Positions 1-28,254 of a stretch of 64,000 nucleotides of DNA are shown here, in pieces; within the stretch, counting starts at the first letter, position 1; each line of letters starts with the position of its first letter. The position numbers and the translations under genes were made by a program. Source of the DNA: Styela clava (Eukaryota); assembly GCF_964204865.1 (NCBI RefSeq), contig NC_135251.1, positions 15,996,001 through 16,060,000 of the forward strand, in the 5' to 3' direction. Under the pieces are notes generated by a model. The model made no database searches. It was not told where the DNA came from and saw only the letters and a program-made list of their open reading frames with translations.

Positions 1-78
1 TACGTCTGCGTTGGAACTAAGGACATATTCTTTACTGCGTGATCTTTTTTACAAATAGATCTTTCCCGCAAAAAAAGG

Positions 79-151
79 CGCCCGATAAGGGACTTGAACC
101 CTTGACCGTTGGATTAAAAGTCCAACGCTCTACCGACTGAGCTAACCGGGC
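79..151 (-). tRNA. trnK-UUU: tRNA-Lys (anticodon TTT)
   Basis: GCCCGGTTAGCTCAGTCGGTAGAGCGTTGGACTTTTAATCCAACGGTCAAGGGTTCAAGTCCCTTATCGGGCG folds into a full cloverleaf with A and B boxes; T7 Pol III terminator at 70-76. Confidence 0.95.
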
Positions 152-1652
152 TACGGTACGCGTTAAAACAAAAGACATAACGGATGATAAGAATGAAAAT
201 TTTTGCAATAAGTGTGTTTGTGCATTGTGCTATGTCCATCGCCAGCTATACACAATCTAATCTTCTCGGAACAAAGACGCTACAGCGGCTGTGGTAACCG
301 GGCCACGGTCCGCATTAAAGCAAAAGACATAACGGATGATAAAAATCAATGATTTTGCAGCTAAAACAATTATAAGTGTGTTTGTGCATTGTGCTATGTC
401 CAACACCAGCTATACACAATCTAACGTTGATCTTCTCAGCGTGACCTATTTTTACAAATTGAACCTTTCCGGAACAAAGATGCGCCCGATAGCGCACTTG
501 ACTCCTTGATCGTTGGATAAAAAGTTCAACACTTTACCGATTAAGCTAACCGTGCTACGGTCCGCATTAAAATAAAAAGACATAACAGATGATAAAAATG
601 AATGATTTAGCAGCTAATACAATTATAAATAGGTGTGTTTGTGCATTGTGCTATGTCCAACGCCAGCTATACACAATCAAACGTTAATCTTCTCAGCGTG
701 ATCTATTTTTACAAATTGAACCTTTCCGGAACAAAGAGGCGCCCGATAGCGCACTTGACTCCTTGATCGTTGGATAAAAATTTCAACACTCTACCGATTG
801 AGCTAACTGGGCTACGGTCTGCATTAAAACCAAAGACATAACGGATGATAAAAGTCAATGATTTAGCAGCTAATACAATTATAAGTGTGTTTGTGCAATT
901 TGCTATGTCCAACGCCATCTATACACAATTCAATCTTCCCGGAACAAAGACGCTCTACCGACTGAGGTAACTCTACCGACTGAGCTAACCGGGCTACGGT
1001 CCGCGTTAAACGAAACATATACCGGATCGTCGGAATCTGTTTATTAAGCAGCTAATACAATTATAAGTGTGATTGTGCATTGTGCTATGTCCAACACCAG
1101 CTATACACAATCTAACGTTAATCTTCTCAGCGTGATTTATGTTTACAAATTGAACTATTCCGGAACAAAGGGGCGCCCGATAGCGCACTTGACTCCTTGA
1201 TCGTTGGATGAAAACTTCAACACTCTACCGATTGAGCTAACTGGGCTACGGTCTGCATTAAAACCAAAGACATAACGGATGATAAAAGTCAATGATTTAG
1301 CAGCTAATACAATTATAAGTGTCTTTGTGCAATTTGCTATGTCCAACACCAGCTATACACAATTTAATCTTCCCGGAACAAAGACGCTCCACCGGCTGTG
1401 GTAACCGGGCTACGGTGTGCAGTCAAACAAAAGACATGACTGATGATAAAAATCAATGATTTAGCAGCTAATACAATTATAAGTGTGTTTGTGCATTGTG
1501 CTATGTCCATCGCCAGCTATATACAATCTATTCTTCTCGGAACAAAGACGCTCCAGCGGCTGTGGTAACCGGGCTACGTCTGCGTTGGAACTAAGGACAT
1601 ATTCTTTACTGCGTGATCTTTTTTACAAATAGATCTTTCCCGCAAAAAAAGG

Positions 1653-1725
1653 CGCCCGATAAGGGACTTGAACCCTTGACCGTTGGATTAAAAGTCCAAC
1701 GCTCTACCGACTGAGCTAACCGGGC
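1653..1725 (-). tRNA. trnK-UUU: tRNA-Lys (TTT)
   Basis: Identical 73-nt cloverleaf followed by a T7 terminator. Confidence 0.95.
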
Positions 1726-3226
1726 TACGGTACGCGTTAAAACAAAAGACATAACGGATGATAAGAATGAAAATTTTTGCAATAAGTGTGTTTGTGCATT
1801 GTGCTATGTCCATCGCCAGCTATACACAATCTAATCTTCTCGGAACAAAGACGCTACAGCGGCTGTGGTAACCGGGCCACGGTCCGCATTAAAGCAAAAG
1901 ACATAACGGATGATAAAAATCAATGATTTTGCAGCTAAAACAATTATAAGTGTGTTTGTGCATTGTGCTATGTCCAACACCAGCTATACACAATCTAACG
2001 TTGATCTTCTCAGCGTGACCTATTTTTACAAATTGAACCTTTCCGGAACAAAGATGCGCCCGATAGCGCACTTGACTCCTTGATCGTTGGATAAAAAGTT
2101 CAACACTCTACCGATTAAGCTAACCGTGCTACGGTCCGCATTAAAATAAAAAGACATAACAGATGATAAAAATGAATGATTTAGCAGCTAATACAATTAT
2201 AAATAGGTGTGTTTGTGCATTGTGCTATGTCCAACGCCAGCTATACACAATCAAACGTTAATCTTCTCAGCGTGATCTATTTTTACAAATTGAACCTTTC
2301 CGGAACAAAGAGGCGCCCGATAGCGCACTTGACTCCTTGATCGTTGGATAAAAATTTCAACACTCTACCGATTGAGCTAACTGGGCTACGGTCTGCATTA
2401 AAACCAAAGACATAACGGATGATAAAAGTCAATGATTTAGCAGCTAATACAATTATAAGTGTGTTTGTGCAATTTGCTATGTCCAACGCCATCTATACAC
2501 AATTCAATCTTCCCGGAACAAAGACGCTCTACCGACTGAGGTAACTCTACCGACTGAGCTAACCGGGCTACGGTCCGCGTTAAACGAAACATATACCGGA
2601 TCGTCGGAATCTGTTTATTAAGCAGCTAATACAATTATAAGTGTGATTGTGCATTGTGCTATGTCCAACACCAGCTATACACAATCTAACGTTAATCTTC
2701 TCAGCGTGATTTATGTTTACAAATTGAACTATTCCGGAACAAAGGGGCGCCCGATAGCGCACTTGACTCCTTGATCGTTGGATGAAAACTTCAACACTCT
2801 ACCGATTGAGCTAACTGGGCTACGGTCTGCATTAAAACCAAAGACATAACGGATGATAAAAGTCAATGATTTAGCAGCTAATACAATTATAAGTGTCTTT
2901 GTGCAATTTGCTATGTCCAACACCAGCTATACACAATCTAATCTTCCCGGAACAAAGACGCTCCACCGGCTGTGGTAACCGGGCTACGGTGTGCAGTCAA
3001 ACAAAAGACATGACTGATGATAAAAATCAATGATTTAGCAGCTAATACAATTATAGGTGTGTTTGTGCATTGTGCTATGTCCATCGCCAGCTATATACAA
3101 TCTATTCTTCTCGGAACAAAGACGCTCCAGCGGCTGTGGTAACCGGGCTACGTCTGCGTTGGAACTAAGGACATATTCTTTACTGCGTGATCTTTTTTAC
3201 AAATAGATCCTTCCCGCAAAAAAAGG

Positions 3227-3299
3227 CGCCCGATAAGGGACTTGAACCCTTGACCGTTGGATTAAAAGTCCAACGCTATACCGACTGAGCTAACCGGGC
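3227..3299 (-). tRNA. trnK-UUU: tRNA-Lys (TTT), D-stem variant
   Basis: Same gene with GAGC>TAGC in the D stem; T7 terminator. Confidence 0.8.
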
Positions 3300-3527
3300 T
3301 ACGGTCCGCGTTAAAACAAAAGACATAACGGATGATAAAAATGAAAAATTTTGCAGCTAATACAATTATGGGTGTGTTTGTGCATTGTGCTATGTCCAAC
3401 ACCAGCTGTATACAATCTAATCTTCCCGGAACAAAGACGCTCCACCGGCTGTGGTAACCGGGCTACGGTCTGCGTATTATTTAATGCTTGATCTTTTTTA
3501 AAATTGAACCTTCCCGGAACAAAGAGG

Positions 3528-3600
3528 CGCCCGATAAGGGACTTGAACCCTTGACCGTTGGATTAAAAGTCCAACGCTCTACCGACTGAGCTAACCGGGC
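3528..3600 (-). tRNA. trnK-UUU: tRNA-Lys (TTT)
   Basis: Identical 73-nt cloverleaf; 3' flank CCTCTTTGTT. Confidence 0.92.
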
Positions 3601-4207
3601 CACGGTCCGTATAAAGCAAAAGACATAACGGATGGTAAAAATCAATGTTTTAGCAGCTAATACACATATAAGTGCGTTTCTGCATTGTGATATGTCCAAC
3701 GCCATCTATACACAATCCAATCTTCCCGGAACAAAGACGCTCTACCGACTGAGCTAACCGGGCCACGGTCCGCGTTAAACGAAACACATACCGGATCGTC
3801 GGAATCTGTTTATTAAGCAGCTAATACAATTATCACAATCTAACGTGAATCTTCTCAGCGTGATTTATTTTTACAAATTGAACCTTTCCGGAACAAAGAG
3901 GCGCCCGATAGCGCACTTGACTACTTGATCGTTGGATAAAAAGTTCAACACTCTACCGATTGATCTAACCGTCTACGGTCTGCATTAAAACAAAAGACAT
4001 AACAAATGATAAAAATGAATGATTTAGCAGCTAATACAAGTATAAATAAGTGTGTTTATGCATTGTGCTATGTCCAACGCCAGCTTATACACAATCTAAT
4101 CTTCCCGGAACAAAGACGCTCCACCGGCTGTGGTAACCGGGCTACGGTCTGCGTATTATTTAATGCGTGATCTTTTTTACAAATTGAACCTTCCCGGAAC
4201 AAAGAGG

Positions 4208-4280
4208 CGCCCGATAAGGGACTTGAACCCTTGACCGTTGGATTAAAAGTCCAACGCTCTACCGACTGAGCTAACCGGGC
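4208..4280 (-). tRNA. trnK-UUU: tRNA-Lys (TTT)
   Basis: Identical 73-nt cloverleaf. Confidence 0.92.
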
Positions 4281-4774
4281 CACGGTCCGCATTAAAGCAA
4301 AAGACATAACGGATGATAAAAATCAATGATTTTGCAGCTAATACAATTATAAGTGTGTTTGTGCATTGTGCTATGTCCAACACCAGCTATACACAATCTA
4401 ACGTCAATCTTCTCAGCGTGACCATATTTTCACAAATTGAAACTTTCCGGAACAAAGAGGCGCCCGATAGCGCACTTGACTCCTTGATCGTTGGATAAAA
4501 AGTTTAACACTCTACCGATTGAGCTAACCGGGCTACCGTCGGCATTAAAACAAAAGACATAACGGACGATAAAAATCAATGATTTAGCAGCTAATACAAT
4601 TATAAGTGTGTTTGTGCATTGTGCTATGTCCAACGCCAGCTATACGCAATCTAATCTTCTCGGAACAAAGACGCTCCAGCGGCTGTGGTAACCGGGCTAC
4701 GTCTGCGTTGGAACTAAGGACATATTCTTTACTGCGTGATCTTTTTTACAAATAGATTCTTCCCGCAAAAAAGG

Positions 4775-4847
4775 CGCCCGATAAGGGACTTGAACCCTTG
4801 ACCGTTGGATTAAAAGTCCAACGCTCTACCGACTGAGCTAACCGGGC
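4775..4847 (-). tRNA. trnK-UUU: tRNA-Lys (TTT)
   Basis: Identical 73-nt cloverleaf with a T6 terminator. Confidence 0.95.
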
Positions 4848-5887
4848 TACGGTACGCGTTAAAACAAAAGACATAACGGATGATAAGAATGAAAATTTTT
4901 GCAGCTAATACAATTATAAGTGTGTATAGATTGTGTATAGATGGCGTTGGACATAGCAAATTGCACAAACACACTTATAATTGTATTAGCTGCTAAATCA
5001 TTGACTTTTATCATCCGTTATGTCTTTGGTTTTAATGCAGACCGTAGCCCAGTTAGCTCAATCAAAAGATTAACGTTAGATTGTGTATAGCTGGTGTTGG
5101 ACATAGCACAATGCACAATCACACTTATAATTGTATTAGCTGCTTAATAAACAGATTCCGACGATCCGGTATATGTTTCGTTTAACGCGGACCGTAGCCC
5201 GGTTAGCTCAGTCGGTAGAGTTACCTCAGTCGGTAGAGCGTCTTTGTTCCGGGAAGATTGGATTGTGTATAGATGGCGTTGGACATAGCAAATTGCACAA
5301 ACACACTTATAATTGTATTAGCTGCTAAATCATTGACTTTTATCATCCGTTATGTCTTTGGTTTTAATGCAGACCGTAGCCCAGTTAGCTCAATCGGTAG
5401 AGTGTTGAAATTTTTATCCAACGATCAAGGAGTCAAGTGCGCTATCGGGCGCCTCTTTGTTCCGGAAAGGTTCAATTTGTAAAAATAGATCACGCTGAGA
5501 AGATTAACGTTTGATTGTGTATAGCTGGCGTTGGACATAGCACAATGCACAAACACACCTATTTATAATTGTATTAGCTGCTAAATCATTCATTTTTATC
5601 ATCTGTTATGTCTTTTTGTTTTAATGCGGACCGTAGCACGGTTAGCTTAATCGGTAGAGTGTTGAAATTTTTATCCAACGATCAAGGAGTCAAGTGCGCT
5701 ATCGGGCGCCTCTTTGTTCCGGAAAGGTTCAATTTGTAAAAATAGGTCACGCTGAGAAGATCAACGTTAGATTGTGTATAGCTGGTGTTTGACATAGCAC
5801 AATGCACAAACACACTTATAATTGTATTAGCTGCAAAATCATTGATTTTTATCATCCGTTATGTCTTTTGCTTTAATGCGGACCGTG

Positions 5888-5960
5888 GCCCGGTTAGCTC
5901 AGTCGGTAGAGCGTTGGACTTTTAATCCAACGGTCAAGGGTTCAAGTCCCTTATCGGGCG
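5888..5960 (+). tRNA. trnK-UUU: tRNA-Lys (TTT)
   Basis: Identical 73-nt cloverleaf on the plus strand. Confidence 0.92.
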
Positions 5961-7295
5961 CCTCTTTGTTCCGGGAAGGTTCAATTTTAAAAAAGATCAA
6001 GCATTAAATAATACGCAGACCGTAGCCCGGTTACCACAGCCGGTGGAGCGTCTTTGTTCCGAGAAGAATAGATTTTATATAGCTGGCGATGGACATGGCA
6101 CAATGCACAAACACACTTATAATTGTATTAGCTGCTAAATCATTGATTTTTATCATCAGTCATGTCTTTTGTTTGACTGCACACCGTAGCCCGGTTACCA
6201 CAGCCGGTGGAGCAACTTTGTTCCGGGAAGATTAGATTGTGTATAGCTGGTGTTGGACATAGCAAATTGCACAAAGACACTTATAATTGTATTAGCTGCT
6301 AAATCATTGACTTTTATCATCCGTTATGTCTTTGGTTTTAATGCAGACCGTAGCCCAGTTAGCTCAATCGGTAGAGTGTTGAAGTTTTCATCCAACGATC
6401 AAGGAGTCAAGTGCGCTATCGGGCGCCCCTTTGTTCCGGAATAGTTCAATTTGTAAAAATAAATCACGCTGAGAAGATTAACGTTAGATTGTGTATAGCT
6501 GGTGTTGGACATAGCACAATGCACAATCACACTTATAATTGTATTAGCTGCTTAATAAACAGATTCCGACGATCCGGTATATGTTTCGTCTAACGCGGAC
6601 CGTAGCCCGGTTAGCTCAGTCGGTAGAGTTACTTCAGTCGGTAGAGCGTCTTTGTTCCGGGAAGATTGGATTGTGTATAGATGGCGTTGGACATAGCAAA
6701 TTGCACAAACACACTTATAATTGTATTAGCTGCTAAATCATTGTCTTTTATCATCCGTTATGTCTTTGGTTTTAATGCAGACCGTAGCCCAGTTAGCTCA
6801 ATCGGTAGAGTGTTGAAATTTTTATCCAACGATCAAGGAGTCAAGTGCGCTATCGGGCGCCTCTTTGTTCCGGAAAGGTTCAATTTGTAAAAATAGATCA
6901 CGCTGAGAAGATTAACGTTTGATTGTGTATAGCTGGCGTTGGACATAGCACAATGCACAAACACACCTATTTATAATTGTATTAGCTGCTAAATCATTCA
7001 TTTTTATCATCTGTTATGTCTTTTTGTTTTAATGCGGACCGTAGCACGGTTAGCTTAATCGGTAGAGTGTTGAACTTTTTATCCAACGATCAAGGAGTCA
7101 AGTGCGCTATCGGGCGCCTCTTTGTTCCGGAAAGGTTCAATTTGTAAAAATAGGTCACGCTGAGAAGATCAACGTTAGATTGTGTATAGCTGGTGTTGGA
7201 CATAGCACAATGCACAAACACACTTATAATTGTATTAGCTGCAAAATCATTGATTTTTATCATCCGTTATGTCTTTTGCTTTAATGCGGACCGTG

Positions 7296-7368
7296 GCCCG
7301 GTTAGCTCAGTCGGTAGAGCGTTGGACTTTTAATCCAACGGTCAAGGGTTCAAGTCCCTTATCGGGCG
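7296..7368 (+). tRNA. trnK-UUU: tRNA-Lys (TTT)
   Basis: Identical 73-nt cloverleaf. Confidence 0.92.
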
Positions 7369-8016
7369 CCTCTTTGTTTCGGGAAGGTTCAATTTGTAAA
7401 AATGAACACGCATTAAAGAATACTCAGCCGTAGCCCGGTTACCACAGCCGGTGGAGCGTCTTTGTTCCGGGAAGATTAGATTGTGTATAAGCTGGCGTTG
7501 GACATAGCACAATGCATAAACACACTTATTTATACTTGTATTAGCTGCTAAATCATTCATTTTTATCATTTGTTATGTCTTTTGTTTTAATGCAGACCGT
7601 AGACGGTTAGATCAATCGGTAGAGTGTTGAACTTTTTATCCAACGATCAAGTAGTCAAGTGCGCTATCGGGCGCCTCTTTGTTCCGGAAAGGTTCAATTT
7701 GTAAAAATAAATCACGCAGAGAAGATTCACGTTAGATTGTGTATAACTGGTGTTGGACATTGCACAATGCACAAACACACTTATAATTGTATTAGCTGCT
7801 CAATAAACAGATTCCGACGATCCGGTATGTGTTTCGTTTAACGCGGACCGTAGCCCGGTTAGCTCAGTCGGTAGAGCGTCTTTGTTCCGGGAAGATTGGA
7901 TTGTGTATAGATGGCGTTGGACATATCACAATGCAGAAACACACTTATATGTGTATTAGCTGCTAAAACATTGATTTTTACCATGTGTTATATCTTTTGT
8001 TTCAATTCAGACCGTA

Positions 8017-8089
8017 GCCCGGTTAGCTCAGTCGGTAGAGCGTTGGACTTTTAATCCAACGGTCAAGGGTTCAAGTCCCTTATCGGGCG
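8017..8089 (+). tRNA. trnK-UUU: tRNA-Lys (TTT)
   Basis: Identical 73-nt cloverleaf. Confidence 0.92.
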
Positions 8090-8569
8090 CCTCTTTGTTT
8101 CGGGAAGGTTCAATTTGTAAAAATTAACACGCATTAAAGAATACGCAGCCGTAGCCCGGTTACCACAGCCGGTGGAGCGTCTTTGTTCCGGGAAGATTAG
8201 ATTGCGTATAGCTGGCGTTGGACATAGCACAATGCACAAACACACTTATAATTGTATTAGCTGCTAAATCATTGATTTTTATCGTCCGTTATGTCTTTTG
8301 TTTCAATGCAGACGGTAGCCCGGTTAGCTCAATCGGTAGAGTGTTAAACTTTTTATCCAACGATCAAGGAGTCAAGTGCGCTATCGGGCGCCTCTTTGTT
8401 CCGGAAAGTTTCAATTTGTAAAAATAGATCACGCTGAGAAGATTAACGTTAGATTGTATACAGCTGGTGTTGGACATAGCACAATGCACAAACACACTTA
8501 TAATTGTATTAGCTGCAAAATTTTTCATTTTTATCATCCGTTATGTCTTTTGTTTTAACGCGGACCGTA

Positions 8570-8642
8570 GCCCGGTTAGCTCAGTCGGTATAGCGTTGGA
8601 CTTTTTATCCAACTGTCAAGGGTTCAAGTCCCTTATCGGGCG
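8570..8642 (+). pseudogene. tRNA-Lys variant, probably non-functional
   Basis: D-stem mismatch (TAGC), anticodon loop CTTTTTA (internal T5), variable loop change; T7 downstream. Confidence 0.7.
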
Positions 8643-8924
8643 CCTTTTTTTGCGGGAAGGATCTATTTGTAAAAAAGATTACGCAGTAAAGAATATGTCC
8701 TTAGTTCCAACGCAGACGTAGCCCGGTTACCACAGCCGCTGTAGCGTCTTTGTTCCGAGAAGATTAGATTGTGTATAGCTGGCGATGGACATAGCACAAT
8801 GCACAAACACACTTATAATTGTATTAGCTGCTAAATCATTGATTTTTATCATCCGTTATGTATTTTGTTTTAATGCGCACCGTAGCCCGGTTAGCTCAGT
8901 CGGTAGAGCGTTGGACTTTTAATT

Positions 8925-9419
8925 AATTCTCGGCGAAAAAGACCTGTGCAAACAGCCTCACAGAACGTCGCACAACCTACCAACATAGTTGCTGATGTGA
9001 CTGAAGTATCGACCTCTGAATCTGAATCCAAATGTCTGCGAGAGATCAAAGACTGGTCAGAATGTGAGGACGTCGAAAAGATCAGCCCGCTCAAAACACC
9101 ACCATCGAGACCGGCCAGGCAATTGTTCCGACTCAAAGAAACATCCACCATCGGCAACACCCCGTTCAACCCGCCTTCAATGGGGAAAGCGTATGTTAAG
9201 GTGAAGATTCACAACATCGAGTCTTTTGATACAACAACATCATCGGTCTCCGAGGAAACACCAGATGAAACAACATCTGCTCCAGCATATCTGGAATCAA
9301 ATATGCAGCCGCCAATTGTCGATCTGACCAGTAAACGTAGCAGGGAGGACACAACATCTACAGACTCGTCAACATCCAAAACTACCAACAAGAGAGCAGT
9401 AGGCAAAAAGAAAAAATAA
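8925..9419 (+). CDS. C-terminal part of retroelement ORF1p (5'-truncated)
   Basis: ORF-track 157 aa, no in-frame stop back to the insertion junction; homologous to 10941-11315. Confidence 0.7.
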   Translation, partial: NSRRKRPVQTASQNVAQPTNIVADVTEVSTSESESKCLREIKDWSECEDVEKISPLKTPPSRPARQLFRLKETSTIGNTPFNPPSMGKAYVKVKIHNIESFDTTTSSVSEETPDETTSAPAYLESNMQPPIVDLTSKRSREDTTSTDSSTSKTTNKRAVGKKKK

Positions 9420-9586
9420 CAGTGAGTGCCTCAACCTAGGTTTCGACCGCGAACCATCAAAATTCCCTTCTCGTCTTTTCATTTCGGGCATGATATGTTA
9501 CAATTTGGCCTTTAAACAAATTTCCCCGATCAAACGCCCAGTTGATGGCGTTAAATCTCAACTACGGTAATACCATCTAACAAGTA

Positions 9587-9733
9587 ACGGAAGTGATGAA
9601 AGGAATTCTACCACAACACATGGTATACAAAATGGTGATCTCTATTACAAAGAGAATTGATCCATAAACTTCCGTCGGCACAGTCTGGGTATGAAGGCAT
9701 TTGGGCTGGATTCCAGACTTGTCGTCCTGATCC

Positions 9734-9735
<2 letters not shown>
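9587..9735 (+). ncRNA. Box C/D snoRNA-like structured module forming the 3' end of the retroelement
   Basis: ACGGA-A-GTGATGA (box C 9593-9599) ... CTGA (box D 9727-9730)-TCCGT, a perfect 5-bp terminal stem directly before poly(A); internal k-turn hairpin 9632-9665. Confidence 0.7.
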
Positions 9736-9780
<45 letters not shown>

Positions 9781-9974
9781 GTTGGACTTTTAATCCAACG
9801 GCCAAGGGTGCGAGTCCCTTATCGGGCCCCTCTTTGTTCCGGGAAGGTTCAACACACTTATTTTATAATTGTATTAGCTGCTAAATCATTGATTTTTATC
9901 ATCTGTTATGTCTTTTGTTTTAATGCAGACCGTAGCCCGGTTAGCTCAATCGGTAGAGTGTTGAACTTTTTATC

Positions 9975-10160
9975 AGTCAGTCAGTAATCAGTAGTTTATT
10001 TTCTCACCATACTAAATGCACACTTGATATACAAATTGCAATAAATAAATAAAAGGCATTTCAGGGTGAGGGGAGCCGCGAGAAACCAAATTTGGTTATC
10101 GAGCAGCGGCACCCATAAGCACAAGTCTAACAAGGAAATAATAACAAAAAAAAAGTCGAA
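9975..10160 (-). mobile_element. 3' end of a retroelement (LINE/SINE) with AATAAA and an (ACTG)n-like tail
   Basis: Minus strand reads ...ggtgagaaAATAAActactgattactgactgactg. A diverged second copy lies at ~62106-62560 (agtttatt..tcaccatact, gcatttcaggg, tggttatc..cagcg.caccc). Confidence 0.6.
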
Positions 10161-10221
10161 CTGTGTATATACAGTTCAATTCAATTAAAGAGTCCAGCTG
10201 CACACTAACACAAATGTATTT

Positions 10222-10263
10222 CTGTAACGTTTCGTCCGACCAGAGTCAGACTTCCTCAGACAA
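10222..10263 (-). ncRNA. Minimal type I hammerhead ribozyme (Penelope-like element type)
   Basis: Minus strand: TTGT-CTGAGGA-A-GTCTGAC-tctg-GTCGGAC-GAA-ACGT-T-ACAG. 7-bp stem II, palindromic ACGT stem III, 4-bp stem I. Confidence 0.6.
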
Positions 10264-11462
10264 GCAGTTTACAACAAGTATCATATATACGTTAATTTGA
10301 AAATAAATATAAATACGTCAAGGCATTCCAACCAGGTATGCCCAGTAATCTCGCGTTTCAACAACAACAAAACAAGAAACGACTCCGTGCACCAATAATC
10401 GTAGTAGCCATGACGATAGCTGCGTTATGGTAAAGTCACAATGGTACCATTGTGAGGTGACTGTGGCCGTATGTAGAACATTGTATGGTGCAGGGCTACA
10501 GTTGTTTAGGTATCAATGGTAAAAATGAAGTTTCACGAACAGGAAGCCTACCAGTAGTATGGTATGCATGCAACGATAGTACCGGTAGTCATAAATAATT
10601 TAACCTTTTATGGTAAGAAGAAAATTGAACTTCAGTGTGTAACTGGAAGGCACATGATCAATGAATAAATGGTATTCTACAAAATCAAGGTAGGATTAAA
10701 TTTCATGTGGAACTAACCACTTCATACAAAACATGGAAAAAGCAAAGGTAGGTAGGTTGATAAAAATCTAATGTCAGTCAATTTATGACATAACGATGCC
10801 AAATGTACAAAGATAAAAAAAACAATTTACAATCGAATATGGTTTAACATTAAAATGATGTTATTAAGGGTGCCAGAGACCAAGATCTTAGTAACTTAGA
10901 TCGGGCTCAAATATTACCAATATATAACTGACTAAATTACATGACATCACAGTGCATGAACTATGCATGGTTTCTTCTTACACTAAAACGACAAGATCAA
11001 CCCAGGAAATTGAAACAGAGCTCTACAATCGGAAACACTCCCTTTCGTCCACCTCAGAAAGGGAGTGCATATGTGAAAGTGCTAATCCATAATTATGAGA
11101 GGAGCGACTCACTATTTAGCGATTCAACAGATAAAATATTATCTGCCCCTGCACACTTGGAAAGTAACCAAACATTAACAAAAATCGTGGACATAACAGA
11201 TTCAAACTTGGAAAATACGGATTTTAATACTAAAAGGATAAGACAAAGCACTTCATCGGAGTCGTCGTTCTCAACGATTCCAGAGGAGAAAAGAACACTG
11301 AAGAAAAAGAAATGACGTGAGTGCCAAATTTTTCTGTTTCGTTAAACACGTACCCTCGCTACGTCATATTATTGACATTAGATAAGTTTAAAGAAACGAA
11401 TTATGTAAACAGCTACCACAAAGCTCAGTTATATTGAGTTGATTACTTACTTAATTTGTGCA

Positions 11463-14400
11463 ATGGCATTAATCAAAATAGTATCTTTAAATTCAAATGG
11501 TTTTCAACATCGCTTGGATACTCTAAGAAATTTCATTGGACACGAGAGGCCTAATATCTTGTGTGTGCAAGAGGTGCACAGAATAGAAAAAACATCGGTC
11601 GCGCAGTGGGCGGAATCTTTGGGTTATAATGTATTCGTTAACACGCTGGACAAATTTGATAATTATTATACTAGCTTTAGACAAGGGACTCTGATCATGA
11701 CAAAGTTTGAAAATACTATAATCCCGGCCACATATACAATTCATATACTGCATCGTCTGGATAGCATCGAAATTGAAATTGACAATAATGTAATCAAGAT
11801 ATTCAACGTATATGCACCAGCTCAGAATGGACCGGAGAAAACTAAATTATTTGAAAACTTGGTGGCAACCCTAAAAAACTATACCGACTCATACGACCTA
11901 CTAATTGTAGGGGACTTCAATTGCGTTCTGGAACCACTCGACACGTTAATTACGAAAAACTTCAAACTACGGCCGCCAGAGAAAATACTTAAAAGTTTCA
12001 TCCAAAACAATAATATATTTGATACCTACTGTAAAAAATACCCCCAAAAACAAATATTTACTCATTATTTCGGAAAACAAGGACGCAGGATTGACAACAT
12101 CTACAACTCATATAATCCGCAACATTTGATATCACATATCGGGCACATACCAAACACTATAGCTGACCATCTCCTCTGTCCCACAATCAAATTAAAGCAA
12201 ATCAAGAAAATCCGCTGGGGGAAAGGGACCTGGCGGAACAACCTAACGCTCTACCACGACCCTATCTTTATTAGTATTATAAAAAACGTATATGAACATG
12301 CTCTGGCCGACATGGAGAACTTTAACAATATACAAGATTGGTGGGATTATTTAAAAAACAAAATTAAAAAAGTTTCGATTGCTTACTCTAAAACCAAAAC
12401 CCTGGACAAAAAAAAACAATATTGCCCGAATTCGTAAACAAATAGATGTCACCATCAATGAAGGCTTAGAGGGAAATGTAATTAAGATTGGAAATCTGAA
12501 AGCACAACTTAAATTAATGTTAGATGAGCGTAAACAATTGGATTTATTGATGGCTAATATGGAAAATTTAGAGAAAAATGAAAAACCAACAAGGATTTTC
12601 TACTCAAAAATAAAACAAAGAGCGAAACAAACTACTATAGAAAAACTAAAATCCAAACACAACACAATGACCTCAAACGAAGACGGGGTCATGTCGGAAA
12701 TCGAAGAATTCTATACAGAGCTGTGGAAAAATGAAAATGAGCCAGATATACGCCACCAGAAATACTATCTTAAATTAATAGGCCAAACTCAAATAAACGA
12801 AGAAGACAACAACCTCCTTGAACAACCGGTTACCCGGGAAGAGATCTACAATGCAATACAATGACTGCGTAACAACAAAACTCCCGGCATCGATGGTCTT
12901 TCGAAAGAGTTTTATACTACATTCTGGGACATAATAAAAACGCAGCTTATACAACTAATAAATAATATATTACTTTTCGGCCCATTTCCCAAATCATCAT
13001 CTATCGCTAAGGTAAAGTTACTATACAAGAAAAACGACGAGACGAAACTAAAAAACTGGCGACCTATTACCACTCTTAATATGGACTACAAAATCATCTC
13101 CAAAATCATAGTGAATCGTTTGGCCCCTATACTGAATAAAATTATAAGTCCCACACAAAAATGTTCCCTTTTGGATCGAAATATGTCGGATATCCATTAT
13201 AACATCGATGCCGTCATAAGGCATTGTAAACAAAAGGAAATACCAGGAACCATCGTCCTAATTGATAACCTTAAAGCATTTGATCGAGTAAATCACAATT
13301 TTCTATTTCGAACCCTGCAATATATCGGACTCGGGAACAAGACTTTGAAAGCTAAAAAAAATATGTATCGCGACAATAAAACTATCGTAGACTTAAACGG
13401 TAGACTATCTAGAGAGATAAATATAAGGAGAGGCATAAAGCAAGGATGCCCCTTGAGTATGCTCCTTTACGCCGTTATAGTTGAACTTCTGGCAAGATCA
13501 ATACGCGAAAATACAAACATACGCGGAATAAAGCTCGGACGCCATGAGTTTAAATTGGACCAGTTTGCAGATGACGTCACCTTCGCTGTACGAGACCAAA
13601 ATTCAATTGCACAAATCTTCCAAGAACTATATAACTTCCAATTAGCTTCCGGACAACAAATTAATCAGGATAAGACAGAAATATTATGTATTACAAAAAC
13701 ATCCCAAAATTTAATAACCAGGTCCCAATACAACAAATATATAAAAGAAACAGTAAAGATACTTGGAATAAAATTTGGACGTAAACAAATAGATAGAATA
13801 TGGGACGAAATAAAAACCAAGCTGATTGGAACCTTGAATTCTATAAAACCCAGACATCTCACTTGGCATGGAAAAATTTTAGTAATCAACTCTCTTATAA
13901 TGTCTATAGTAACTTTCCATGCAAAAGTAAAGACCATTTCGCCAAAAACAACCAAAGAAATAGAAAGCATACTATTTAAATTCCTCTGGCTGCCGGAAAA
14001 GATCGAGGCAATTGGAAGAAAAAAGCTCCAACTACCATTGACGGATGGGGGTTTAAACATGGTGGAGGTAAACTCCAAGATTGAGACATGTCAGGTAGAA
14101 AAGCTGGAAGCCTTTATGATTGGTAAAGACTTAAATCAATTCTGGCACCACGAAGGCCTGTATTCATTAGGATCAAAAATCAAATTTATAAATAAGGATT
14201 TATACTCCAACTCCACTCCCCACAGCAACGTAATCCCTATATACTGGGCTCATCTGTTCAAGATCTTTCAGAAAATTGACCTCACTCGTGACCAGTGGAT
14301 AACAGCAAGGCATAGACACATATACCAATCACTTAAAGAATATACTAGACAACAGTTACGGGAACAGCCACCACAACAACTAGCCATAAACTGGGAGGAA

Positions 14401-14946
14401 GTACACCTCTTCAATACAAGCTATATATCAAATGTAGAAAGAATTGTCTCCTATCGAATCACCCGAAATGGATACATCTTCGGGGAAAAGAAGCGGGGGA
14501 TGACGATCCGGTTCAACCCATCGGGCAAACTGAAAATCCTAAACTGTAAGTTATGGAAGGACAAATCGGACAACACCAAGCACATCTTTCTCAATTGTAA
14601 AACAACAGGTAATTATATTACAGAAATCTTGAACTGCCTCAATGCCATACTGGACACCCAAATTATCATAAATAAAGAACAGATTTTTTATAATAGTTAC
14701 AATGGCCCACATCAAATTGCTGTGACCAAAGCCTTTGTTCTACTGAAAAAGAACGTAATTAAATTAAAACTGCAACTAGACACCCTGGATCGATATCTGG
14801 CCCCCACAGACGATGACATCATACCCAAAACTGTAACCCAAATCATGGAATTCCTCATAATGATAAAACATAAATTCAATGACGTGCAACCTTTAGGACT
14901 AAGGAGTAACTGGAAGGAAATACTAAACGGCTATCTGACGGTCTAG
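11463..14946 (+). pseudogene. L1/Tx1 ORF2 (endonuclease-reverse transcriptase) with two lesions
   Basis: ATG 11463; frameshift at the A9 run ~12408-12416; in-frame TGA 12862-12864; otherwise continuous (ORF pieces 11439-12437, 12379-12864, 13081-14946). Confidence 0.9.
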
Positions 14947-15062
14947 CAAAATAAAATAGCAACTTGGGAACTTTTAAACAGCCACCATAAATGGTAGACC
15001 AAACCAAAATTCAAAACTGCTCGACGAACTTTGTTTTTAGCCCCGATAATACATTCAATACA

Positions 15063-15376
15063 GCGGAAATGATGAATCGGGATCTTCTCGGTGGATGTCA
15101 TGCTGCGTTATACGCGGTATGTACGGAAGCCGGGGTGGCCGAAGTTGTGCCCTGCTCTGCATGGCATGGACGGAAGCCCCAGGTTTAAGCGTATGCATTG
15201 CATATGTAGAAGCCCGTGGTGGAAGTCTGTGCTTTGCTGATGCGCGGCACATACTGAGGCCCACGGAAGTGTATGACTACTGCATGCAGTAGCATGCTTA
15301 TGAAGCGATTGACCGATATAACTCGGATATGACGTGTCTTAAAGACACTGATCTGAGTCTGGGAAAACTGATCTGC
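15063..15376 (+). ncRNA. Box C/D snoRNA-like structured module forming the 3' end of the L1/Tx1 element
   Basis: GCGGA-A-ATGATGA (box C 15069-15075) ... CTGA (box D 15368-15371)-TCTGC terminal stem, 2 nt before the A tail; k-turn hairpin 15321-15358 and many internal hairpins. Confidence 0.7.
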
Positions 15377-16311
15377 CATAAAATATAAAAAAAATAAAAT
15401 AAAAAAAAACCAACGGCTTTCGGCGCCGTTTGAAAGTTTTGGAAAGTTTCATTAAATATACTAATCCAAATGTTCTTTGTGTGCAAGAAGCACATAGAAT
15501 AGATAAAGACTCAGTGATTCTTTGGGCAAATGATTTCGGATACAATATACATTTCAATACTATAGGAAAATTCGACAAGCATCACACAAATTCTAAGCAA
15601 GGAACCGCTATTTTAGTCAAAATAGAAAACTCAATATTGCCGTCAACTTATACAATCCATATAAAGGACCGCATAGCATGTGATAGCATAGAAATTCGTG
15701 TCGATGATCACATTGTAAAAAATTTTAATGTATACGCCCCGGCTCAAGACAGACCGATTAAGACCGAATTCTACCAGAATCTGGTAAAAATACTGATAAA
15801 CTACTGTGACACCGACGAGATGTTACTCTTTGGCGATGTCAATCTAGTACTAGACCAAGCCGACACCTCAAACCCCAAAAATTTCAAAATTCGGGCCCAG
15901 AAAGAATCTTTAAACAATTTATTGAGCAGAACAACTTTTCGGACACCTTCAGAAAGAAATACCCCAAAAAACAAATTTATACATTTCTATTCCGATCACA
16001 TGGCCGTCGAATTGACAATATATATAATTCTAAAAATTTGGACCACCTAATTTCAAGAATTGAACACACAGCAAACACAATATCCGATCACCTGCTGTGT
16101 ACGGTGATTGAACTTGTGCAAATGAAAAAGGTCCGATGGGGGAGGGGCACGTGGCGCAATAATTTATCACTATACAGAGACCCAAAATATGTGGAAATTA
16201 CAAAAAACGTATACAAGGCCGCTCTTGCTGAATTAGACAATTATGACGTAATACAAGAATGGTGGGATATTTTGAAAATGAGAATAAAAAAGAGCACAGT
16301 AGCATACTCGA

Positions 16312-17231
16312 CAGGGGTCACCGGCTGTGTGGCCATCGTTAGTGTGCTAAGCGTTAGGTTCGCAGGTTAGAATCTCATGCGAGGATAGTTATGTGCAAGA
16401 GACTTGCTGGACCCCTTGCTGTTGTTGGGATGGCTTCCTTTGCCATCAAGTCTATGCTTACGAAAACGAATAACTTACCTATTCCAATACCCGACATGAA
16501 ATGGTAACCAGACGAGAGGCCTTGGTTCGCCATATGGTTAAGCCGTCTTATCGACCATCTTCTCCCCCGGGATAAATATGTAAATCCCATCCTATCCTGA
16601 GTTTATGTCAAAAATGTTGATTCACAAAGATAGGTTGAACGAAACAATGGTCTCGTAAAATAGAATTGCTGTATGATTTGAATCGCGAGCTTTTTCTGCC
16701 CGTACTGCGCTGGATAGTTAGCGCGGTAGCGTGACAAGCCGTGAAATATCTTTTCGCTTTGCCGTCGCTACAATCGCCCCACAAATGAGACACGCGCAGG
16801 CTGTTTTCATGTTGGTAAAAATATATCCACCCCCAATCATCATGAAAATGGTGGGTTTTTCATCGTTTTCTGCCATTTTTCTTTGGAATCAATAAATATA
16901 TTATTGCTGCTCCACAAACCAACGGACAAGAAAAAGCGCGGGTTCGTAGTAAGTGATATCAGCGTGATGTCATAATTGGAAGAGTGTTAATTGACCCGTC
17001 ACATTACTGAGGGTCAAATAAAAATCAGGTTGTTGGCTACAATAATTAATATAGTGCCATTCCCGATTCCCATATAAATGTGATTTATACAAGAATAGCA
17101 GGACAAAATTTAATCGATGCAGCTTACTCATAAGCGCCGTTATTAAGCTCTGTTTGGAACAGACCTGCGGGCGACTCATATGGTCTTCACGGGCGACTTG
17201 GTGCCCACGGGCAACGCGTTAGTGACCCCTG
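16312..17231. mobile_element. hAT-like non-autonomous DNA element inserted in the second L1
   Basis: TIRs caggggtcac / gtgacccctg; the L1 reading frame (AYSKNK) resumes after it; degenerate TSD ctc(taa)ga. Confidence 0.65.
16322..16598 (+). mobile_element. Probable tRNA-derived SINE nested in the hAT element
   Basis: A-box/B-box-like head (tggccatcgttag...ggttagaatct) and (ATCCT)n-like 3' tail (aaatcccatcctatcct). Confidence 0.5.
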
Positions 17232-17842
17232 CTCTAAGAACAAAGCAAAAACAAAACGTAATGCGATAACGCAGCTATGGGAAAGTCTAGACAAACTCAT
17301 TAATGAAGGAAAAAATGAGAATCTGCCGCAAATCGAAAGAATAAAACTTCAACTAAAAACATCACAAGAAGAGCGCAACCAACTAGATATCCTAATGGCC
17401 AAAATGAGTGACATGGAGCAACACGAAAAGCCAACAAAAACTTTCTTTGAGAAAATTAAAAGAAGGACAAAACAAACTATCATAGAAAAGCTGATCTCTC
17501 AAAATAACACCATAGTCACCGGCGAGGACGAAATAATATCGGTGATAGACTTCTACTCAACCCTGTGGGGAAAAGAGCACCAAACAAACGAGCTATATCA
17601 ACACCAATATCTCTCCTTAATGAGTCATACACAAATAACAGAGGACGAAAACCGCACATTGGAACAACCCGTCTCCAGTGAAGAAATTCTTGATACAATA
17701 AAGTCCATGCGCAACAACAAGTCCCCCGGCCTGGACGGCCTGAGTAAAGAATTTTATACAACTCTATCCGATTGATCACACTCTGATGAAAATGGGGTTT
17801 GAATCCGAGATCTTCAACCTGCCAGCGCAGTCATATACTAGG

Positions 17843-28182: not shown

Positions 28183-28254
28183 GTATCTAGCTTGTCAGTA
28201 TTAAAACATAAACTTTTAATCCAGCGGTCAATGGTTCAAGTCTCTTATCAGACC
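28183..28254 (+). pseudogene. Degenerate tRNA-Lys(TTT) relic (palindrome mirror of 18352-18420)
   Basis: Same alignment to the tRNA-Lys 3' half. Confidence 0.7.

Follow-up and report, generated by a model that had tools for sequence, protein, structure and literature searches.

Why is one copy of a lysine tRNA gene in the tunicate Styela clava split in its anticodon arm by a retroelement, and what selected this site: chance, the tRNA-Lys sequence or the tRNA gene as such? The locus lies in a stretch of 64,000 nucleotides (NCBI RefSeq assembly GCF_964204865.1, contig NC_135251.1, forward strand, positions 15,996,001 to 16,060,000), hereafter the window, whose positions are used throughout. An earlier note, made from the sequence alone, described a recent insertion with a pure A44 tail and a perfect 15-bp target-site duplication (TSD) in tRNA-Lys(UUU), pointed to the inverted repeat CGTTGGA-CTTTTAA-TCCAACG as the target, and inferred a Tx1-type family that targets the tRNA-Lys coding sequence itself. 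The observation is confirmed to the nucleotide, whereas the interpretation is supported only in part.

Inspection of the sequence and a scripted check agree on the anatomy of the insertion (Table 1). The repeated 15 bp, CGTTGGACTTTTAAT, are identical at 15/15 positions, and the 39 nt preceding the insert are those of the canonical gene of the array. Joining the two flanks in silico yields a sequence that ARAGORN calls tRNA-Lys(ttt). However, the 3′ part of the split gene differs at 4 positions from the canonical gene, including the T loop, and this variant occurs once in the 132-kb array region; the copy was therefore probably already a pseudogene or is an odd copy. The 812-bp insert is 98.5% and 98.1% identical to two copies elsewhere, which fits a recent event. 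Its first base (T at 8924) is C in the other copies and thus represents an untemplated or mutated base at the junction.

Table 1. Features of the split tRNA-Lys(UUU) gene and its surroundings in the window.
Positions	Strand	Feature	Support
1..8644	.	Distal part of a tRNA-Lys(UUU) array of about 125 kb (15.88-16.004 Mb of the contig, G000:C2); the window holds 10 intact genes, 6 on the minus and 4 on the plus strand, plus many partial pseudogene units	10 genes by ARAGORN, 10 tRNA matches by Rfam; 106 exact uninterrupted anticodon-arm sites genome-wide, most of them in this array
8885..8923	+	tRNA-Lys(UUU) nt 1-39, 5′ part of the split gene; the first TSD copy is its last 15 nt (8909-8923)	Identical to nt 1-39 of the intact genes
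8924..9735	+	5′-truncated body of a 1.64-kb ORF1-only poly(A) retroposon: ORF remnant at 8925-9419 (164 codons plus stop, C-terminal part of a 408-410-aa protein with two CCHC knuckles) and 3′ UTR at 9420-9735	Other copies continue upstream with conserved sequence
9587..9735	+	3′ module with box C/D-like layout and a 5-bp closing stem: ACGGA (9587-9591) and GTGATGA (9593-9599) at one end, CTGA (9727-9730) and TCCGT (9731-9735) at the other, directly before the tail	Same layout in 27 of 29 element 3′ ends examined, with A-T, G-T or G-C at the outer pair
9736..9779	+	Pure poly(A) tail, 44 A	Scripted check
9780..9828	+	Second TSD copy (9780-9794) and tRNA nt 40-73 (9795-9828)	4 differences from the canonical gene in the latter
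9935..9974	+	Next tRNA-Lys pseudogene copy, nt 1-40, also interrupted in the anticodon arm	Read from the sequence
9975..15409	+	LINE-A, a longer, degenerate relative: ORF1 remnant, then ORF2 with EN and RT carrying stops and frameshifts, then an A-rich tail; inserted in sense in that tRNA copy, which resumes with CCAACG at 15410-15415 (TSD about 1 bp)	tblastn with the ORFs of the autonomous element, 53-58% identity
15416..17766	+	LINE-B, a third LINE fragment (ORF2 residues 13-489); 5′ junction abuts tRNA position 45/46; no 3′ end found	tblastn as above

What, then, was inserted? We first considered a processed pseudogene of a host gene, but many diverged subfamilies share the ORF-plus-3′-UTR unit and the ORF is homologous to a LINE ORF1. 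The insert encodes neither a reverse transcriptase (RT) nor an endonuclease (EN). Three full copies elsewhere (loci L031, L032 and L033) share the 1.64-kb unit with its single ORF, which is intact in 2 of the 3, and the protein is 46% identical (E 4e-127) to ORF1 of the autonomous LINE described below. With an ORF1 homologous to that of a LINE, no ORF2, a 3′ module laid out as in other elements and a poly(A) tail, the insert is an ORF1-only, HAL1-like non-autonomous LINE derivative. Its family is not specific for tRNA-Lys: of 30 loci retrieved, only the window copy is followed by CGTTGGACTTTTAAT, and of the 8 distinct sites of copies at least 90% identical, 7 are at unrelated sequences that are not tRNA genes. 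Other copies at unrelated TT/AAAA-type sites had been named beforehand as the finding that would refute Lys targeting by this family, and this condition holds, except that those sites are not TT/AAAA-type either. The long element next door (LINE-A) could have been its helper, but there is no DNA similarity between the two.

Still, several observations indicate that the site is not chance. At locus L035, 32 kb away in the array, an independent poly(A) insertion uses the same nick: tRNA nt 1-38 are followed by AGAAT and A40 and then by the arm again, while the insert, the 5′ junction and the tRNA 3′ part all differ from those of the window. In the 132-kb array region, 7 of 7 A-runs of 15 or more are element tails directly in front of a tRNA-Lys arm, and there are no T-runs, hence no antisense insertions.

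A related, autonomous LINE of 5.6 kb provides further evidence. A full-length copy with intact ORFs resides in tRNA-Lys(CUU). Its ORF1 has two CCHC knuckles, and its ORF2 carries an N-terminal APE endonuclease (Pfam Exo_endo_phos, residues 10-238, 2.7e-10), an RT (RVT_1, residues 527-750, 8.7e-30) and a C-terminal Cys/His motif. The best relative of solved structure is human L1 ORF2p (7e-64 over residues 6-896, against 5.6e-25 for R2); homologue searches otherwise returned only unnamed proteins, the best at 34-35% identity, and an atlas search gave only generic names. We refer to the element as L1/Tx1-like, its placement in the Tx1 clade itself being conjectural. Across the insertions, including those of the window and L035, tails of 22-50 A and TSDs of 15, 14, about 11, 8, 6 and 9 bp are those of target-primed reverse transcription.

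Copies of this LINE that are 98-100% identical (19 rows of the search, with 6 full-length 5′ ends) make 8 examined events, of which 7 lie in the anticodon arm, always in sense orientation: tRNA-Lys(CUU); Lys(UUU), as 5 array-duplicated copies; Ser(GCU); Val(CAC); Val(UAC); Cys(GCA), as 4 duplicated copies; and Glu(UUC), from the 5′ junction only. The eighth is a non-tRNA site. This census is partial, since only the best 40 of 134-192 candidates were scored, and it leaves out two near-identical fragments on contigs C18 and C10. Because Rfam at E of 0.01 or below found no partial tRNA matches at the flanks, the tRNA identities come from ARAGORN on rebuilt empty sites or on intact paralogues; Val(CAC) (locus L054) rests on its anticodon loop and 3′ half compared with a paralogue, without the 5′ junction. 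The template-strand nicks fall between linear nt 23 and 36, spread over about 14 nt, and show no shared motif. The anticodon arm is therefore a real, recurrent target in this genome, and the target is tRNA genes in general, not the Lys sequence. By contrast, older relatives are not in tRNA genes when inspected by eye (0 of 9 flanks in one set and 0 of 20 in another).

Full-length copies also carry stacked 5′ pieces of earlier tRNA targets. Locus L072 reads [tRNA-Ser 1-41][24 nt][Lys 18-30][element], whereas L071 and L074/75 read [Lys 14/15-33][Ser 2-41][24 nt][Lys 18-30][element], all matches being exact. 5′-Truncated copies carry no heads and still sit in tRNAs, so that the first nick is the targeted step. 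Chimeras of tRNA and LINE RNA made by template switching are ruled out for the insertions themselves, because the rest of the same tRNA and the array spacer follow each tail, with a TSD. For the heads this origin remains possible, but the parent-type locus L072 makes co-transcription with the host tRNA gene the simpler reading. No transcript spanning a tRNA-element junction was seen: contigs from runs only guessed to be RNA cover 21-25 of 30 bins of the element, but none covers the 5′ junction. It is worth noting that the element contains 20 sense runs of T4 or more, including 4 of T5 or more; Pol III alone should not make full-length RNA.

Based on the above data, we propose, with reasonable though not full confidence, that the window records a recent target-primed insertion of a 5′-truncated ORF1-only element into one copy of the tRNA-Lys(UUU) array, at a site most likely chosen by the machinery of a tRNA-gene-targeting LINE active in this genome. 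What the analysis shows is the architecture of that autonomous LINE and the residence of its nearly identical copies, in sense, inside the anticodon arm of many different tRNA genes; the mechanism is inferred from sequence alone. In this view, the ORF2 protein, or a partner, recognizes a generic feature of tRNA genes rather than one sequence, candidates being the Pol III factors bound to the A and B boxes or the A-box/D-arm consensus itself. It would then nick the template strand between the boxes, prime on the poly(A) tail and generate a TSD of 1-15 bp. The resident copy would next be transcribed together with the 5′ part of its host gene, so that daughters carry this piece as a 5′ head, a step for which the analysis shows a parent-type locus and its daughters. 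Lastly, the ORF1-only RNA of the window would have been mobilized in trans by this machinery, other copies of its family having used other helpers or targets. Since this family shares almost no DNA with the tRNA-targeting LINE beyond the last few bases and the layout of the 3′ module, trans-mobilization is inferred from the shared nick site only.

Could the site be explained otherwise? The notion of a sequence-specific endonuclease that recognizes the tRNA-Lys inverted repeat draws support from three insertions at or within 1 nt of the same nick in tRNA-Lys genes (the window, L035, and L037/L050 in Lys(CUU), which has the same stem). It is nevertheless very unlikely and already contradicted for the inserted family, only 1 of whose 8 distinct sites is in tRNA-Lys and which encodes no endonuclease; moreover, the related LINE is also found in Ser, Val (two species), Cys and Glu genes with arm sequences unlike Lys, and another insertion in the Lys array is nicked about 8 nt further on. 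A one-off hit by a generalist L1-like machinery would agree with most copies of the inserted family being elsewhere, yet it is the least likely reading, as the 106 exact 28-bp sites are a tiny fraction of a 377-Mb genome and the very same phosphodiester bond was used twice in the array; the pattern search found 0 and 3 matches for the reversed control, against 3 true junctions.

The most serious alternative, though still unlikely, is that tRNA genes are fragile, with heavy Pol III transcription, R-loops and fork barriers leaving template-strand nicks that any LINE particle can use. Four different elements (the ORF1-only element, LINE-K, LINE-A and LINE-B) indeed all sit in tRNA-Lys arms, the nicks are scattered without a motif, and the primer ends do not pair with poly(A). 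However, the enrichment is lineage-specific, being seen in 7 of 8 events of the young autonomous LINE but, by eye, in 0 of 9 and 0 of 20 flanks of its older relatives and in only 1 of 8 ORF1-only sites, and all insertions are in sense with regular tails and TSDs, features that endonuclease-independent events of mammalian L1 usually lack. Retention bias, by which random insertions survive only in redundant arrays, is also very unlikely: most hit genes do lie in very large arrays (Lys, 106 exact sites; Glu, 239 matches; Val, 170 matches), where disruption costs little, but arrays are mostly spacer, yet every junction is within nt 23-46 of the gene and in sense. In addition, copies 98-100% identical are too young for strong sorting, and the ORF1-only family and older relatives persist at many non-array sites.

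A LINE that finds any tRNA gene and cuts inside it would imply a different targeting principle for an APE endonuclease, either tethering to the Pol III apparatus or reading of gene architecture, whereas the known site-specific LINEs, which are studied as natural safe-harbour integration systems, read one DNA sequence. The stacked heads are a rare written record of successive hops and of co-expression with the host gene, and units composed of a tRNA 5′ part, a LINE tail and poly(A), which are extremely 5′-truncated insertions, already sit in the arrays and bear directly on the old question of how tRNA-derived SINEs arise. A bolder reading, possible but doubtful on present evidence, is that tRNA genes are recognized as a class, through the Pol III apparatus or the A-box/anticodon-arm architecture, and that each generation stacks a new tRNA head, which together would be a living route to tRNA-headed SINEs. 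The conserved box C/D-like 3′ module, whose function is conjectural, might bring the particle to nucleolar or Cajal-body territory, where tRNA, snRNA, 5S and histone gene clusters gather; this would explain why sister lineages in this genome are found in or near such genes. For annotation, split tRNA genes with long "introns" in large arrays can be LINE insertions, and Rfam scored one such gene as a tRNA with a 60-nt insert.

How does this element compare with known systems? LINEs specific for a single tRNA species are already known, but literature searches, in a collection without most subscription journals and Repbase Reports, found no paper describing an APE-type LINE inside the anticodon arm of several tRNA species; targeting of many isotypes inside the gene appears to be what is new. 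The Tx1 clade of target-specific APE-type LINEs includes Tx1L in a DNA transposon, Keno in U2, Mutsu in 5S, Dewa in the spacer of tRNA-Leu and Tx1-Mar in a Mariner element (PMC4494074, PMC3706591), which bears out the background cited in the earlier note for Keno, Mutsu and Dewa. The element described here resembles these in its APE endonuclease plus RT, two ORFs and poly(A) tail, in a lineage-specific preference for multicopy RNA genes or other repeats (sister lineages here prefer a palindrome-bearing repeat) and in RNA-gene pieces picked up at the 5′ end, as in SINEU heads. However, the known members each recognize one sequence, and Dewa sits in a spacer, whereas here the insertions are inside the coding region of at least 7 tRNA species with unlike arm sequences. 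The RLE-type LINEs of the NeSL group, NeSL-1_TV (tRNA-Pro), LIN15_SM (tRNA-Arg) and LIN25_SM (tRNA-Glu), likewise are non-LTR retrotransposons that target the tRNA gene itself (PMC4640811), but each is tied to one species and encodes a restriction-like endonuclease, downstream of the RT in a single ORF, in place of the N-terminal APE domain and two ORFs found here.

Dictyostelium TRE5-A (PMC3706591) is targeted through Pol III factors. Yeast Ty3 and Ty1 are targeted in this way as well. For these elements any tRNA gene serves as a target, which points to recognition of the Pol III gene or complex rather than a sequence, but they integrate at a distance upstream or downstream of the gene, whereas all junctions observed here are inside it. 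Dada DNA transposons insert at defined positions inside tRNA and snRNA genes of multicopy arrays (PMC3706591, PMC8869645), yet they are DDE transposons with 6-7 bp TSDs and no poly(A), and each family is specific for one gene. Finally, the window insert recalls HAL1, the "half-L1" ORF1-only derivatives of mammalian L1, in having ORF1, a LINE 3′ end and poly(A) but no ORF2. No ORF2-bearing parent with the same 3′ UTR was found for it, several diverged ORF1-only subfamilies exist, and its ORF1, in contrast to HAL1, is of the CCHC-knuckle type.

The DNA studied begins with the distal part of a very large tRNA-Lys(UUU) array, in which ARAGORN finds 10 intact genes and Rfam finds the same 10. Genome-wide there are 106 exact, uninterrupted copies of the 28-bp anticodon-arm site, most of them in this array. 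Beyond the intact genes a further copy begins that is identical to the canonical gene for 39 nt; it is followed by 812 bp of foreign sequence, a run of 44 A, an exact repeat of the 15 nt preceding the insert and the remaining 34 nt of the tRNA. The two flanks, once joined, are called tRNA-Lys(ttt) by ARAGORN. The structure described in the earlier note, a retroelement inserted in the anticodon arm with a perfect 15-bp TSD, is thus correct to the base. The 3' part of the split gene differs from the canonical gene at four positions, two of them in the T loop, and this variant is unique in the 132-kb array region.

A search of the genome with the insert gave about 50 scored matches among 134 candidates. 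The closest copies are 90-99% identical and continue with conserved sequence upstream of the 5' end of the window copy, so the latter is 5'-truncated. Three full copies share a unit of only about 1.64 kb, containing a single ORF of 408-410 aa, intact in 2 of 3 copies, with two CCHC knuckles and no RT or endonuclease, followed by a 3' UTR of about 320 nt and poly(A). The encoded protein is 46% identical (E 4e-127) to ORF1 of the autonomous LINE described below, and the insert is therefore an ORF1-only, HAL1-like non-autonomous element. The earlier note had proposed that this family targets the tRNA-Lys coding sequence itself, and had named the sites of other copies as the test. Of 30 fetched loci of the family, only the window copy is followed by the Lys sequence; among copies at least 90% identical there are 8 distinct sites, seven of which are unrelated sequences that are neither tRNA nor TT/AAAA-like. 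Rfam finds no tRNA at those flanks, only a U1 gene about 700 bp from one copy (locus L005) and a 5S gene about 400 bp from another (locus L008).

The site is nevertheless not a chance one. A genome search for eight A followed by the 15-mer, allowing 2 mismatches, gave four places, against 0 and 3 for the reversed control. One is the window and one (locus L036) is not a tRNA. The third, locus L035, lies 32 kb away in the same array and consists of tRNA nt 1-38, then AGAAT plus A40, then the arm again, with a TSD of 14 bp containing one mismatch; its tRNA 3' part is canonical and its 5' junction is different, making it an independent event at the same bond. Rfam scores this gene, which carries a 59-nt tail-only insertion, as a full tRNA with a 60-nt insert (55.6 bits), and such units of tRNA 5' part plus LINE tail plus poly(A) look like raw material for a SINE. 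The fourth, locus L037, is in a tRNA-Lys(CUU) gene on another chromosome, with the tail one base further upstream. In the whole 132-kb region, all 7 of 7 A-runs of 15 or more are element tails directly in front of a tRNA-Lys arm, and there is no T-run of that length, so there are no antisense insertions.

The insertion in tRNA-Lys(CUU) (locus L050) is a full-length LINE of 5,585 bp including the tail. It has an ORF1 of 495 codons, an ORF2 of 1,162 aa with Exo_endo_phos at residues 10-238 and RVT_1 at residues 527-750, a C-terminal Cys/His motif, a 3' UTR of about 430 nt and A50. Its best solved relative is human L1 ORF2p (7e-64 over residues 6-896), far ahead of R2; database homologues are unnamed and at most 35% identical, and its assignment is therefore left here without separating Tx1 from L1.

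Copies 98-100% identical to this element (19 matches in the genome search, with six full-length 5' ends) resolve into eight examined events, two further fragments on contigs C18 and C10 being left out of the count. Seven of the eight are inside tRNA genes, all in sense orientation. The full-length copy in tRNA-Lys(CUU) is one. In tRNA-Lys(UUU) of the C2 array, a 3-kb truncated copy is present five times with identical junctions, so that this is one event spread by array duplication; the TSD is about 11 bp and the nick lies in the loop. The tRNA-Lys copy hit here has TTA instead of TTT as anticodon in both TSD copies, ARAGORN calls the rebuilt gene a stop-reading tRNA, and the insertion was then copied five times with the higher-order repeat of the array, with tails of 22-39 A. 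A full-length copy lies in tRNA-Ser(GCU), with TSD TAATCC, and another copy, considered without its 5' end, lies in tRNA-Val(CAC). The copy in tRNA-Val(UAC) (locus L071) sits inside an array with 170 matches of a Val(UAC/CAC) motif, with the nick at 31/32; its 5' flank is a Val variant running to nt 66, whereas the 3' flank starts at nt 32 of Val(UAC), giving an imperfect duplication of about 35 bp with several differences, which may be a long TSD plus conversion or a recombinant of two insertions. In tRNA-Cys(GCA) a 380-bp copy is present four times, with TSD TCGACTGC. The copy in tRNA-Glu(UUC) lies at an array with 239 matches of the D-arm motif; its 5' junction follows nt 30 and its 3' end has no tail. 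The eighth event is a non-tRNA site, present three times, with TSD TAAAGAATA. The genome has very large single-isotype tRNA arrays, and these are the regions where the LINE copies sit. Template-strand nicks fall between linear nt 23 and 36 and 5' junctions between nt 30 and 46, no motif is shared at the nicks, and the primer ends cannot pair with poly(A). The 5'-truncated copies lack any 5' head and are still in tRNA arms; it is therefore the first nick that is directed.

Every full-length copy has 13 nt equal to tRNA-Lys nt 18-30 before its first element base, preceded by CTGTTAGTTGT. The copy in tRNA-Ser reads [tRNA-Ser 1-41][24 nt][Lys 18-30][element], whereas the copies in the Val array and at the non-tRNA site read [Lys 14/15-33][Ser 2-41][the same 24 nt][Lys 18-30][element]. 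The matches are exact, apart from one mismatch in the Lys 14-33 head of loci L074/75. The 24-nt piece between the Ser and Lys heads, seen among loci L071-L075, is T(A/G)AACCTTACTAT followed by CTGTTAGTTGT, and the copy in tRNA-Glu has only its last 11 nt. The Ser-resident copy is thus the parent type of the others: its RNA began at or next to position +1/+2 of the host tRNA gene and carried that piece to the next site, a tRNA-Lys, where the same thing happened again. This shows repeated residence in tRNA genes and co-expression with the 5' part of the host gene, whichever polymerase is used; the element has 20 T4+ runs in sense, including 4 of T5 or more, which argues against Pol III for the full length. 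Contigs from sequencing runs that are only guessed to be RNA cover 21-25 of 30 bins of the element at 95% identity or more, and none covers the 5' junction.

Relatives of this element have other habits. A degenerate 5.4-kb relative in the window, LINE-A, whose ORF2 is 53-58% identical, is inserted in sense after nt 40 of the next tRNA-Lys pseudogene copy, with a TSD of about 1 bp. Six bases of tRNA follow, and then a second 5'-truncated LINE fragment, which abuts nt 45/46. In 20 fetched 3' flanks of other LINE-A-type and more distant related copies (72-94% identical to the query), inspection by eye reveals no tRNA part. Four of them, plus one ORF1-only copy, sit at the same position of another repeat on C5, with different tails. 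Several sister subfamilies (3' flanks of loci L004, L012, L014, L018, L026-L030, L070 and L078-L084) insert within about 40 nt of a short palindrome in that repeat family, and Rfam finds no RNA family in the flanks scanned (L004, L012, L014, L018, L026 and L028). None of 9 flanks of 69-90% relatives of the autonomous element is a tRNA, again by eye. Target preference is therefore lineage-specific, as in the Tx1 clade (PMC4494074). The 3' ends of the elements (the window insert, the 3' UTR of L050 on the reverse strand, and loci L002-L030) have a box C/D-like layout directly before the tail, with a 5-bp stem, GTGATGA, then 130-320 nt, then CTGA and the other stem arm. This layout is found in 27 of 29 ends examined, with A-T, G-T or G-C as the outer pair in different lineages, and it may be the RT recognition site or a localisation signal.

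Locations of the features (window positions unless a contig, G000:C, or a fetched locus, L, of this genome is named)
Location	Feature
77-8644	10 intact tRNA-Lys(UUU) genes
8885	Start of the split tRNA-Lys copy
9587-9735	Box C/D-like 3' module of the insert
9736-9779	Poly(A) tail of the insert
9935-17766	Next tRNA-Lys pseudogene copy, split in its anticodon arm, with LINE-A and the second LINE fragment; the array ends here
9975-15409	LINE-A
28213-28254	Degenerate 3' part of a tRNA-Lys gene, from about nt 32 on, preceded by A-rich sequence; far outside the array, inside a gene cluster
G000:C2 15.88-16.004 Mb	tRNA-Lys(UUU) array
G000:C2 15.91-15.964 Mb (array region offsets 33,719-87,888)	Five copies of the 3-kb LINE insertion
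L035 1426-1557	tRNA-Lys gene with the tail-only insertion
G000:C4:22137680-22137830	L071, LINE in the tRNA-Val array, with its 5' flank
G000:C13 18.33-18.57 Mb; G000:C4 22.08-22.18 Mb; G000:C10 6.87 Mb	Large single-isotype tRNA arrays (Glu(UUC) D-arm motif; Val(UAC/CAC) motif)
G000:C5 7.91-7.96 Mb	At least four LINE copies and one ORF1-only copy at the same position of a repeat
L005 3030-3193; L008 950-1058	Two ORF1-only copies within 400-700 bp of a U1 snRNA gene and a 5S rRNA gene, respectively

Based on the above data, the sequences themselves establish TPRT-type insertions, the recurrent use of the tRNA anticodon-arm interval by one young lineage across seven tRNA species, the sense orientation and the transduction of heads, whereas the recognition of a generic property of tRNA genes is an inference. 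Because the nicks all fall between the A and B boxes, we favor tethering to the Pol III factors or direct reading of the A-box/D-arm consensus, a cruciform of the arm being a weaker alternative. The window insert shares only the extreme 3' end and the layout of the 3' module with the autonomous LINE; we infer that it was mobilised in trans by that machinery, since it used exactly the bond used by the tail-only insertion L035 and lies 1 nt from that of L050. The ORF1-only reading of the insert is confirmed, but a reading of the neighbouring LINE-A as its likely helper is not. The interpretation put forward in the earlier note is accordingly supported only in part: a real tRNA-directed retrotransposition system exists here, but the note was wrong on which element carries the specificity and on what is recognised.

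A literature search, limited by incomplete coverage and without access to supplements, found no description of an APE-type LINE that integrates inside the anticodon arm of many tRNA species or carries stacked tRNA heads, and it is in these respects that the system described here appears to differ from those already known. tRNA-gene-specific LINEs exist in the RLE-bearing NeSL group, with one tRNA species each (PMC4640811). Dewa, of the Tx1 clade, sits in the spacer of tRNA-Leu, TRE5-A integrates near tRNA genes and not in them, and Dada DNA transposons insert inside tRNA genes (PMC3706591; PMC8869645).
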